Of a DNA stretch of 64,000 nt, positions 2,556 through 8,500 are shown piece after piece. The translations under genes were made by a program, and so were the position numbers. This stretch comes from Pecten maximus (Eukaryota): assembly GCF_902652985.1 (NCBI RefSeq), contig NC_047022.1, forward strand, positions 7,626,001-7,690,000. Direction: 5' to 3'. Within the stretch, counting starts at the first letter, position 1. Every line of letters begins with the position of its first letter. The notes beneath the pieces are model-generated. The model made no database searches. It was given only the letters and a program-made list of their open reading frames with translations, and was not told the origin of the DNA.

Positions 2556-5500
2556 CTGAAACAAAAATAACGATTAAGTTATGTGTTCATCTAATGCCAT
2601 CTCTACATGATAACAGAGTCTAAACAAAAACTATGCTAACATGCTAAGGAATGACTGACATGTCTTTACAATAAATTTTAGCTCAATTTTACAAGTTTTT
2701 TGGCCACAAGCTTATGATTCTGTTTATCACATAACTAGTATTTCATATCAATTTGAACATAGGTGAATACTTGCAATAACTTTTTTTTTAAGACAGGCAA
2801 ATTTCAACTCTGATAACTTATTTTTCTCTACAGAGACAATCGTACGTTGTATATTTCTTTTGTTGTCTGAACCTACTGATGAAATCACATAACTTATTTT
2901 TCTCTACATAGACAATCCTACAATGTTGTTTATTTCTTGTGTCATCCGAAGCTACTGACAATATCACATAGCACTATCAGACATACGTTGATTAAGGCAT
3001 CGCTGTATTACATAGAACAGACCAGTTACGTAATTATCAAAATTGTCCTTTGGACACGGGTATCGGAGATACATATCCTACAGTTAAACAAGACTGATCC
3101 ATGCCTGTAGGAAGAGAAGCACTTACCGACATGACATCAACGTAGAGGATGAAGAAATGGAGTCCCATAGACAGGGCCATGGCTCCTAACAACCACTTGT
3201 TACACCAGGGTGGCATCACCATCAGGGACTGGTTCTCAGACAAGCTGTAACAGCAAAAATCTTCTGTCTATACGTCAATTACAGTATGTCTATAATACAT
3301 CTACATCTCTGATCTTTGTATTTTGTATCTCAGACTAATATATTTTGTATCTCTGATTTTTGTGTTTTGTATCTTGGATTTTTGTATCTCAGATTTTTGT
3401 ACCTCAAATTTTTGTACAGGTTAATTCAACAATGGTTTAACACGGGTCATTTTTTAAAAACTTTACCCCGCCCCAAACTGCCGCAAAAATACTCTCTATA
3501 TCTCAATTACAGTATGCCTATGCGAATCTATATCTCCGATTTTTGTATCTCCAATTTTTGCACAGGTCAATTCTGCAATGGTATATTTCTATCTTTTTTT
3601 TTAAAACTTTACCACGCCCCAAATTACCAAAAATTATCTATTTATATGTCAATAACAATATTTCTTTTTAATCTACATGCAGACAATCCAATACTGGTCA
3701 TCTTTAAACTTTACCCAATCCAAACTCATCCCTGAAATATTTTGCTAGATCAATGAAAAACAGTTGTTTTATGCAATAATGAGCTGTTTTTAAGTTGTAT
3801 TCTGTCTGCAGATTTTTTTCACGAGTGTAAGAAATCTTATAAAAATCATTTCAAACACAACAACCATATCCAGGTCTTTAAACAAATATGTGTAATATTA
3901 TGTGTAACACAAATCTAAACTTCTAGTATAATATATAGTTCCTACAAACAGGTTTCCTCTTTATATCACATTCCACTTAATATAACCAAGCAGTTTCTGC
4001 TTCACATTCTTAATATCACTTGTTTAAGTTAATATCATGTTTTCATAAAATATTGATATATATATATATTCCTTATCTATATTGTCTACATAATATATCA
4101 CGTTATAAACTCCAGATAATACCATGCTCTTGAGTACATTTCTGAATTAAATTCATGACGTGTGTGAAATTACAAAATCTGCCCCAAAACATCCTTAATC
4201 TTAACATATCCAAAGTTTATTTTTATCTTATCTTCCTTTCAAATTTGTTTTAAAAAAATAATGAATTACTTCATCCTGTAAACATTTTATAAAGATATTG
4301 GCATTTCATAACAATTTCCAGGGATCTTTTGTAATTTTCAGTAATGGTGACATTGACCTCTGACCTTTGGACTTGGACAGTTACCAGATATTTTTAGTTC
4401 ATAATAATTGGCTCATAATTGTCCATCAAAGTATCTAGAACATAAGACCACTGTCAGGTTTTGAATAATTTCATATGTACAACTATTACTTCTGTTACAG
4501 CAAGAACTGAAAATATCCCCCCCCCCCCCCCCCCCCCCCTCCCGATACAATTTCTACCAGGTATTACTGTAAATAACACACTTATAATATATACTAGGAA
4601 TAAATTTCATGTTACTTTAAATAACACACTCCCGATGGGAAAGACATACAACATGCTATGTCTTTTTTATTATTAACACCCAGTTATTGACAAAGTAAGA
4701 AATTATTTATCATGCGTGTGTCGAAGCTAACATGCATTTTCCTCACCAGTTTAAGGGTCCGACTGGAGCGTCTACTCTCATATATACTCTTATTGTGGGC
4801 ATAGACTTGTCTAAAATTCAAGCACAGCTCACAGAAACAAAGCTTACCGAGGTGAGTGAACCTGGCAAAGATGAGTCAAGCTCACAGAGAAAATGTTCAT
4901 CAAAGTAAGCTTAGCTCACCGAGACAAACTGAACTCATCAAAACAAGTTCAACTCATCATGAAAAGCTTAGCTAACCAAACAAGTTTAATCTTATTGGGA
5001 AAAGCTTAGCTCACCAAAACAAGTTAAACTTATTATGAAAAGTTTAGCTCACCAAAACAATTTAAACTTATTATGAAAAGCTTAGCTCACCAAAACAAGT
5101 TAAAACTTATCGCGAAAAGCTAAGCTCACCAAAACAAGTTTAAACTTGCATTGACAAGCTCACCTGGTAAGCTCTGCTCACCGAGACAAGCTAATTCACT
5201 AAAGTATATAAGGAGTAGACGCCCCACAGGAATATGTGTCAGTAACCGGTACCACAAAGGGAAACAACTGGACATGCAAACCAAAACCCAATCCTCAGGT
5301 TTTTATTACAATAATCTCTAATATTTCATCTCTGGCCAAAATACATGATATTAAATTTCAGTGATTATTATTCCTGTTAATCTAGCAATGTAGACGCTGT
5401 CCAAGAAGAATTTCCCTCTGTAGTACAGTAGCCTTAACTGAACTCTGCCCTCCGTCTCGCAGCCGGATAAAAATGTGGAAAATGCACAAAAATAGCAATT

Positions 5501-8500
5501 ACATAGTTCAAATAGTGCCAAAATCAAACTTTTTTCCATATAATTTATGATTTACGATAAATTACTAAAATGCTAAATCTTTTAGTGAAATTTTAAGAGA
5601 AAAGAGAAATCCGGAGTCGGAGAGGTGCAGTCAACACTCGGCTCAGGAGATTCGGTTTTTTCCCTTTGTGATGCAAATTTGCTAACACACCAGTAGCACT
5701 ACTTTGTCCAAAGCCTGAATTTATAGCTTACTTGACCATAGAAATCATATAATAATGGCAAATGTCTTTTACATGTTTTTTTTTACTCAAATTTATAGCA
5801 TAATTCATAAGTGATCTTTAAGGATGAAATGGAAAATATTACCGAAGCATTATGCATGCTTAATTTTTATAATCTAGTATAATTTATGTACAATATTTTG
5901 TAAACTGGAACCACATGTGGTACCTCAATTAAGACTTTGGACAAAGCAGTACATACACCTGTTGTCAAGGGTTTACAAAGACCAAAATTTCTCTCAACCT
6001 CGACCTTGTTTACAAAAGTTCAATGCTTGTAGAGAACTACTTGGAGGTCAAAGTGCTGCCGATTTTATTCAGATTTTATCAAAATGCATTTTCAATATTT
6101 TCAAAACAATAAAAAACTTAAGAGATTTTGTTAGAGGTTTGGAGAAATTTTGGATTGTCTCCCCTTTCCAGTCAGACCCCTTACCTGTTGAGAGCGTTAA
6201 GCATTTCAATGACGACCAGGACGGACAGAGCCATCGTCATGGGTGCTGGATGGTCGAAGACCTTGCAGTCGACACCAAGGAAGCGCTCGTCCTGAGCAAG
6301 ACACTGTGAGTGATGGGTCTATTGAAGAAATACGAACTGTTACCACACAAGCCCAGCACCTTTTATCCAGAATTACACTGGCAAGGCATACATTTGTAAC
6401 ACCACCTGTATCACCACCAGGGGGCACCACAAACTGGTAAATGCCTGGCCAGAGAGCATTCTGGGAAAGACAGCACAAATACAGGAAACACGTGTCAAAA
6501 TGTTTTGTCAAAAAAATGTTTTTATCTTAATTTAATCTGCCAAGACCGCAAGACTAGTTGTTCCTGTGTTTGTGTGTCAGATTTAGCAATCAAGAGTCCA
6601 GCGACTCTTTCCCCTTTGCATGCTCCTTCTAACCATGCAGTGATCATGGTCAAGATCAGTCCAGGCCAGTAGTGACCAGTGGTCAAGCATCCTTTCCCTC
6701 AATATTGTAAAAGAGACATATCAACTATAATCAACTATAATATCCTTACATAAGCTATTAAGAATGTTCTTTACTTATTTCAGAGAAAGATCCAACAACA
6801 AAATTCTTGTAGTCTCTTCCACATTTTGATAAATATGTGGTTTAAAATTAAAAAGAATGTATGAATCCTGATGGAGTCACTTTTTCAGTTTGAGGACTGA
6901 CCGTATTGACCACTGGACTTCTGGCTTAACACGACTTGACCTCAGATCAACACATGGGGTCAAATAGTGACCAATACAAGTAATACCTGTTTAGGGCATT
7001 AAGCATTTCAATGGTGACAAGAACTGACAGAGCCATGGTCATTGGCTCAGGAGCACCGAAGATCTTACAGTCGATTCCAGGGAACATCTTAGGCTCAGCC
7101 AGACACTGCATGTGATGAGTCTGCAATTCAATTCATCAACCAAAGTCTATACATTAACACTCTTCCGTATCATGGCGGAGTTACCTCCCCTCCTGATGAA
7201 CAGGTATACAGAGTAACTTCCCTTGCTGAGGTCATCTGACCAATTAGTACACAGTACCTTAGGGGCAAAACCTTTGCATACATTGCCTATCTTCCCCTTC
7301 ACAGTAACTTTCCTTGCTAAAGTTGAAATATTTCCGAATTTCCAACCCTTTCCCGACATTAAATGCCGAAATCATCTGATATATATCAAAGATACAGTTA
7401 AAGAGAAAAATAAAATATTTCTTTTCTTCTATATCAAAGCAGTTATTTATCTTCCCTCATAGTAAGTCAAGTTTTATAATCCTTGTCTCCACATTACTAC
7501 CATTTCCTCTACTATTTTCCTGTAACCTTCACCTTTCAATCAAAATTGGAAGCACATCCAATCACTGTCTGGCTCGGTCCCAAAAATAACCAGTTGTGCA
7601 AAATATACATTCATATCCTTTCAAAATAATCTCTAATCCTTGAACCAAATTTGTTTTAACTTCAGATTTCAATAGACTTGTTTCCTTGCATCCTGTCCAA
7701 TCAGGTTTTTGGTATTCAGACCTCGTTTTTTTTTGTTTAACGTCCTATTAACAGCCAGGGTCATTTAAGGACGTGCCTGGTTTTGGAGGTGGAGGAAAGC
7801 CGGAGTACACGGCGAACCACCGACCTACGGTCAGTACCAGGCAACTGCCCCACTTGGGTTTCCAACTCGCCACCCAGAGGTGGAGGGCTAGTGATAAAGT
7901 GTCGGACACCTTAACCACTCGGCCACCACGGTATTCAGACAAGCAGAATCATGGTAGGTCAAGCCCACATCTGCAGCCATGTTAGACAGTGTCCATACTT
8001 ACCAACTGGTAGTAGTTCAGTTTGGGTCCTTTGTCGTAAACCATGAACCACCAGGCGGCAGCACCAACAGTTGCACATCCAACGTAACCTGTCGTATTGA
8101 ATTATATACATCTTAACATTATCAAAATCATTCAATAATAAATATTAATTTCACCTAAAGTATAATTTTTATTTTTTTGCATATCTCATGTATTTAAATC
8201 AGAATACCCAATTCAACATTTTCTCTTTTTTATGTTTTTTAATTAACGTTATTACTTTTCGAAAAAGGCCAGCGGATTCAAATTGAGCAAGTTCGACCCT
8301 TTACTATTTACTGTAGTCAGGCTGTTCCATCTAATGTGATAACATATGCGGATAACAACAACCAATCACTGCCATGCTACCAAATGGTAATGCATGACCA
8401 AATGATGTCTAGTTGCTGTGGTCGGACCAAAGTAAATCAGAGGTCGATCATAGTCGACTAGACATGCACATCGTCACTTGTTGTTTCTCTACACATGCGA

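Follow-up and report, generated by a model that had tools for sequence, protein, structure and literature searches.

A putative docking-site/selector set of competing long-range RNA helices at two mutually exclusive exons of a scallop SERCA gene

Background

When two versions of the same exon lie in tandem and each messenger RNA (mRNA) contains exactly one of them, the question is what selects the one and keeps out the other. This question is raised by a gene for a SERCA-type Ca2+ ATPase of the scallop Pecten maximus, which lies on the minus strand of a 64,000-nucleotide (nt) stretch of contig NC_047022.1 (assembly GCF_902652985.1, positions 7,626,001 to 7,690,000), hereafter called the window, the positions of which are counted from its first letter. 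The gene contains two neighbouring homologous exons, here designated a and b. In docking-site/selector control, intronic elements (the selectors) compete for pairing with one common element (the dock); most demonstrations of such control come from arthropod genes, and a few come from vertebrates. In the literature we found no description of a docking-site/selector system in a SERCA gene or in any mollusc.

An earlier note, made from the letters of the window, had proposed a switch of this kind, in which an element in the intron after exon b (5279-5234, in transcript orientation) pairs either with a site after exon b (5690-5659) or with a site after exon a (6574-6546). By analysing the pairing energies along the pre-mRNA, the exon joints in assembled RNA and the homologous loci of distant species, we find that this observation is largely real and that its selector assignment is partly wrong, namely, there is a single dock with three mutually exclusive partners, one after exon a and two after exon b, and the strongest of these was not part of the proposed switch. 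That a competing-structure device is functional in this SERCA gene, as the sequence would suggest, appears to us quite possible, though we stop a little short of calling it probable.

Results and discussion

Twin exons of a SERCA gene

The exons of the gene run from ~30.8 kb down to 2.4 kb of the window. It is assigned to SERCA because its exons, searched singly, resemble the transmembrane segments of that pump. Open reading frames (ORFs) homologous to the twin exon carry the JGI names "P-type Ca2+ transporter type 2A" or "Ca2+ transporting ATPase", and the ORFs that neighbour the twin exons in two distant loci (L010 and L011, see below) match PF00689, PF13246 and PF00702. The duplication of the exon, as claimed earlier, is evident: the twins are both 134 nt long, show 75% nucleotide identity, have intact AG/GT splice sites and encode alternative versions of loop L7/8 together with the start of helix M8.

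The RNA evidence consists of assembled contigs from four public runs of four studies, mapped to 2900-8200. These contigs contain the joints that lead from the upstream constitutive exon into either twin and from either twin into the downstream constitutive exon (Table 1), all of them GT..AG on the transcript strand. Form a is present in three of the four runs and form b in all four (run X7 contains form b only), and none of the contigs of these runs joins exon a to exon b. Exons a and b are spliced mutually exclusively, i.e. they constitute a tandem homologous cluster of which exactly one exon enters each mRNA. Since 134 is not a multiple of three, the use of both exons, or of neither, shifts the reading frame.

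One dock and three competing partners

The dock comprises three sub-helices (5274-5268, 5265-5250 and 5242-5234), with a UGCAUG hexamer at 5278-5273. Its partners are designated A, B and C (Table 1), and they engage the dock spans 5278-5235, 5269-5234 and 5274-5234, respectively. As the dock bases overlap, the three pairings exclude each other, in agreement with the earlier statement that the selector options share dock bases. The sub-helices are common to A, B and C, and the spacers between them are unrelated. A mixed arrangement can also be formed: in a fold of 501 nt, A holds the dock core while the 5' half of B holds the 3' sub-helix. The elements are placed as selectors would be, with C following exon a (at 350 nt) and B and A following exon b (at 494 and 741 nt). 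With the C-dock duplex, exon b would lie within a loop of ~1.4 kb, while the A-dock helix (a stem of 41 base pairs (bp) with a loop of ~115 nt) and the B-dock helix are internal to the downstream intron.

Partner B is the first of the two selectors proposed earlier. The predicted helix of 14 bp plus 9 bp with 5690-5659 has an energy of -30.9 kcal/mol (z -5.7), which was equalled by none of 1000 shuffles, and it reaches -33.8 kcal/mol when extended to 5691-5654. The second selector fared differently: the pairing with 6574-6546 can be drawn, with ~21 interrupted pairs, but at -20.7 to -23.6 kcal/mol it stays at chance level, 29 of 1000 shuffles being as good even before correction for position. 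The 11-12 bp at 6608-6620, which had been listed as a further match only, are real and were understated, as they are the core of C, a 43-nt element (6637-6595, -33.7 kcal/mol) that pairs along the full length of the dock. The predicted looping out of exon b by an a-side pairing holds in its geometry for the C-dock duplex, the a-side partner being 6637-6595 and not 6574-6546.

The dock is the best partner of A, of B and of C within a 4.7-kb segment of the pre-mRNA, i.e. the pairings are reciprocal-best, and in 300 dinucleotide shuffles of the dock the observed energy was never equalled at rank 1, 2 or 3 (146 intronic target windows). The same element emerges from an unbiased scan, in which 290 windows of the downstream intron were set against every upstream intronic window: when these are ordered by three independent partners, ranks 1-3 fall to windows of the dock, so that 5279-5234 is the top multi-partner element among the 290, and a first-intron partner at -33 kcal/mol or better exists for only five of them, two of these five being dock windows. 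Partner C is notable only given the dock.

The energies of A on the sense and antisense strands are -44.7 vs -28.9 kcal/mol (with 9 vs 0 G-U pairs) and those of C are -34.2 vs -23.0 kcal/mol; this sense-strand stability of A and C fits selection on RNA, as judged from sequence. The earlier claim that many non-canonical positions are G-U on the transcribed strand stands for these two elements and not for B. In a scan of 3000-8300 against Rfam only two sub-threshold matches were obtained (SNORD78-like and MIR7125-like), so the hairpin is not explained by a known RNA family. Two approaches were abandoned, namely RNAduplex suboptimals of the whole introns, which were uninformative because they returned full-length duplexes, and a simple pair-score aligner, which was biased to AU-rich matches.

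Table 1. Exons and pairing elements of the twin-exon region (positions in the window).
Feature	Position	Strand	Evidence and remarks
Upstream constitutive exon, 88 nt	8003..8090	-	joints 8003/7120 and 8003/6318 in RNA contigs; translation corresponds to SERCA M7 region
Exon a, 134 nt, a-type variant	6987..7120	-	joints 8003/7120 and 6987/3244 in runs X1, X4 and X12; translated
Partner C, in the intron between exons a and b, with two GCAUG	6595..6637	-	-33.7 to -35.2 kcal/mol; antisense -23.0; dock is best partner
Second selector of the earlier note, weak, probably outside the system	6545..6584	-	-20.7 to -23.6 kcal/mol, z -2.1; dock only 4th-best partner
Exon b, 134 nt, b-type variant	6185..6318	-	joints 8003/6318 and 6185/3244 in 4/4 runs; repeat family D5
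Weak extra dock complement, 6-31 nt past exon b donor	6153..6178	-	-25.4 (sense) vs -17.3 (antisense) kcal/mol; alone not significant
Partner B, first selector of the earlier note	5654..5691	-	-33.8 kcal/mol; dock is best partner in 4.7 kb; no strand asymmetry
Partner A, local, strongest	5395..5444	-	-43.9 to -44.7 kcal/mol, 41 bp including 9 G-U; antisense -28.9
Dock, 46 nt, 906-951 nt past exon b	5234..5279	-	rank 1-3 of 290 intron windows; 0/300 shuffles equal per rank; genome-unique
Downstream constitutive exon, 118 nt	3127..3244	-	acceptor for both a and b joints; translated

Twin exons in distant species

Searches with the exon b peptide against 1.84 billion representatives and with the exon a ORF against a set of 5.8 billion proteins returned distant species only and no pectinid. 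A protein search with an intronic ORF that covers element A gave no matches. Of the loci recovered, L002-L004 and L009-L012 were compared, where L009 is ERZ25767047 and L011 is ERZ25069296; L005-L008 (Tara metagenome contigs) were too short. The exons of the distant loci show 64-84% nucleotide identity to those of the window, and their introns yield no alignment to it. The a/b exon pair is present in the same order in at least six independent distant loci, which implies that the duplication is ancient.

The dock core sequence is absent from L002-L004. Two of the other loci contain an analogous arrangement. In L009, a dock at 9829-9900 (923-994 nt past exon b) has three partners, namely S2 at 56 nt past exon b (-79 kcal/mol), S1 at 55 nt past exon a (-50) and S3 (-39), and at each of these ranks none of 100 shuffles was equal. 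In L011, a dock at 5399-5479 (847-927 nt past exon b) pairs with S2 at 199 nt past exon b (-67) and with S1 at 189 nt past exon a (-48), and its pairings exceed the null obtained with the reversed dock. Both docks are much stronger than that of the window and lie at a similar distance of ~0.9 kb past exon b. They have an exact 11-mer and an exact 8-mer in common with each other, while by BLAST only the exons of the two loci align. By analogy, L009 and L011 support the docking-site/selector idea.

The remaining loci present a more varied picture. L002, which like L010 is a complete locus, has one long-range pairing between its two introns (-43 kcal/mol), for which there is no competitor; a candidate dock at 7290-7385 of this locus was discarded, as it is a tRNA-derived short interspersed nuclear element (SINE). 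In the same locus (9576-10360), six degenerate copies of the exon after the twins lie in tandem behind it, with a 139-nt period and in-frame stops, which may represent pseudo-exon amplification or an assembly artefact. In L003, the introns of which are compact, a downstream element is complementary to the donor site of exon b (814-829/1126-1141, 16 nt, 88%) and the same downstream region is complementary to a second site (984-995/1123-1134), hinting at a donor-masking variant of the theme of competing pairings.

A possible mechanism and its alternatives

Exon usage, complementarities and their statistics were computed or observed; from these we infer any effect on splicing, and its direction, as follows. 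The dock and its partners would act as a right-hand docking-site/selector set, the competing long-range helices of which bias the choice of the twin exon. A helix of C and the dock would place exon b in a loop and draw the donor of exon a towards the downstream acceptor, and would thereby favour exon a; pairing of A or B with the dock would keep the dock local, so that exon b would stay available. As (U)GCAUG motifs occur in the dock and in C, a protein may tip the balance.

A number of results weigh against this mechanism, and several of them speak for another explanation, in which the complementarities are real and have no role in the choice of exon. The exon would then be chosen by splice-site strength and tissue-specific proteins, exclusivity would be enforced by the frame shift that a length of 134 nt entails together with nonsense-mediated decay, and the intron would merely be rich in inverted repeats. 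No RNA structure is needed to account for exclusivity at the level of the mRNA, as the length of 134 nt already does so, and the intron contains further hairpins that are comparably strong or stronger (5950-5927/5721-5698, 6153-6134/6001-5982 and 5226-5213/4777-4764). In a control in which the first intron was compared with the reversed second intron, the best pair (-37.4 kcal/mol) equals or beats the C-dock pairing (-35.2), which is therefore unexceptional in this comparison. Of 122 natural pseudo-docks taken from all over the window, 1-3 were as good as the dock at each rank, and two resembled it in their three-partner profile. Partner B, furthermore, is without strand asymmetry. In the computed ensemble of 1787 nt (from the donor of exon a to past the dock; equilibrium only, without co-transcriptional folding or proteins), the dock core pairs with A at P = 0.95, with B at 0.04 and with C at 0.00, i.e. 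C has no share of the dock at equilibrium. As A dominates to this extent, a switch needs either kinetics or a protein that blocks A.

The distant loci add to these objections. The S1 pairing of L011 is only moderately significant, since 5 of 80 shuffles attain its rank-2 energy, and in L010 the same kind of scan revealed nothing beyond its null. In L012 the intron between exons a and b (675-724) measures 50 nt; as it leaves no room for a selector and is probably too short to splice, another mechanism, e.g. steric exclusion, would operate there.

What a lack of function in exon choice accounts for less readily is that three partners contain the same three sub-helices separated by unrelated spacers, that none of the 300 shuffles was equal at any rank and the dock tops an unbiased scan, and that A and C are asymmetric between the strands. 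In addition, L009 and L011 repeat this architecture, their dock cores being conserved in part, and the duplication of the exon dates back too far for neutral similarity between both introns to have persisted. We regard complementarity without a function in exon choice as a possible explanation, to be taken seriously and nevertheless doubtful.

A narrower explanation, which we consider improbable, is that only the local A-dock hairpin matters (e.g. by masking or presenting the UGCAUG, or by shortening the effective intron) and that B and C are incidental. A-dock is by far the strongest helix and dominates the ensemble, it has the clearest G-U signature of the sense strand (9 vs 0), and the GCAUG of the dock is paired within it. 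Yet the dock is also the best partner of B and of C, at ranks 2 and 3 no shuffle comes up to B or C, and the docks of L009 and L011 likewise have a partner after exon a.

The exact two-state switch of the earlier note, between 5690-5659 and 6574-6546, is very improbable. Exclusive exon use and one element with several exclusive partners were correctly anticipated, and both of its pairings can be drawn on the same dock core; its a-side pairing, however, is the one that 29 of 1000 shuffles match and for which the dock is the 4th-best partner, and the stronger partners A and C were left out, A (5444-5395) being the one that takes the core at equilibrium. Finally, that the elements derive from a transposon inserted in the intron and similar to a miniature inverted-repeat transposable element, of which they would be the terminal inverted repeats or fragments, is hardly tenable: the surroundings are repeat-rich (a 38-nt tandem array at 5147-4934 with a 14-nt inverted repeat, and a SINE at 7931-7725), but instead of the many copies expected the 521-nt region 5200-5720 matches only itself in the 918-Mb genome (3,983 contigs) and the 27-nt dock core has no second genomic copy at up to 3 mismatches, which makes a dispersed transposon origin unlikely, one copy sits in a different intron, and G-U asymmetry is not expected for DNA repeats.

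Comparison with known systems

The right-hand docker geometry has been described for insect 14-3-3zeta, Mhc and MRP1 (PMC6071210). Like the exons of these genes and those of the Dscam1 exon 4 and exon 9 clusters (PMC6071210, PMC4691838), the scallop exons are tandem, homologous and mutually exclusive. The likeness to the insect right-hand systems extends to the elements, as a single one in the intron after the last variant has overlapping complementarity to elements after each variant, and pairing with the upstream selector would loop out the intervening variant. The scallop case differs from them in that it concerns a SERCA gene and a mollusc, that two or three partners instead of one follow exon b, and that the local partner is ~10 kcal/mol stronger and dominates at equilibrium. 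Human ATE1 similarly has a mutually exclusive cluster of two exons (7a/7b), where one partner is contested by more than two intronic elements (R1-R5); mutagenesis has validated these elements, which are conserved across mammals, whereas the scallop set is put forward on computation and cross-species analogy (PMC7797038).

Selectors have been proposed to originate by duplication of one arm of a stem-loop together with the exon (Ivanov and Pervouchine 2018, PMC6071210). L009 and L011 fit this model, in that their selectors lie at near-equal offsets past exons a and b (55/56 nt in L009, 189/199 nt in L011), whereas the offsets in the scallop window differ (350 nt vs 494 and 741 nt).

A further parallel concerns the (U)GCAUG motifs. 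Next to the UGCAUG of the dock and the two GCAUG of C, each of the docks of L009 and L011 contains two (U)GCAUG, and in the region of the scallop gene GCAUG was observed 9 times where 2.3 were expected. Bridges of RNA bound by Rbfox have been proposed for SCN-alpha exons 5a/5b (bioRxiv 10.1101/2025.08.16.670673), which, like the scallop exons, are mutually exclusive twins with complementary intronic elements that bear or adjoin (U)GCAUG. In scallop, as such a bridge would require, (U)GCAUG is found in a distal element that pairs near the regulated exon. Unlike the SCN-alpha case, the scallop case has motif counts only to connect it to Rbfox, and from these counts we infer, by analogy, no more than a possible link of an Rbfox-type protein to the dock/C pairing.

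Other features of the locus

Several features of the introns were recorded alongside. The downstream intron contains the inverted repeats 5698-5721/5927-5950 (24 nt, 88%) and 5982-6001/6134-6153 (20 nt, 90%), which together with the other pairings form a consecutive chain of hairpins from exon b to the dock. Directly after the dock lies a 38-nt tandem repeat of 5.6 copies (4934-5147), enclosed by a 14-nt inverted repeat of 93% complementarity (5213-5226/4764-4777), and this unit may be a separate insertion. Further into the same intron lie 27 consecutive C of the plus strand (4517-4543), poly-G in the transcript, which are predicted to pair (-37 kcal/mol) with the pyrimidine tract that immediately precedes exon b (~6476-6430) and could also form a G-quadruplex.

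The intron upstream of exon a harbours a tRNA-derived SINE-like element (7725-7931, minus strand), over which the RNA contig depth amounts to 10^4 to 10^5 with many loose ends, indicating an abundant dispersed repeat that is expressed from many loci. A tandem array with a period of ~310 nt is found in an upstream intron (~23219-24171, minus strand) and shows repeated ORF-like peptides in all three frames.

Conclusions

Judged by its sequence, the scallop dock with its partners is a plausible further member of the docking-site/selector class. A more far-reaching reading, which we put forward as rather unlikely, is that of an ancient device common to molluscan-type SERCA genes, in which a dock with Rbfox motifs, ~0.9 kb past exon b, would toggle between selectors on the a-side and the b-side, and would thereby act as a protein-gated RNA bridge that sets the M8/luminal-loop variant of a tissue and that is kept by compensatory evolution despite sequence turnover.

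If the proposed mechanism is true, it would point to two SERCA isoforms, so far unstudied as a pair, with different L7/8 loops and M8 starts beside a Ca2+-binding helix; these isoforms may differ among scallop tissues, one of the runs having form b only. The control of splicing by competing RNA structures would then reach a further phylum and a core gene of Ca2+ handling. The locus would also provide a tractable two-exon model, in which the wide differences in helix strength would make kinetics versus protein gating testable.

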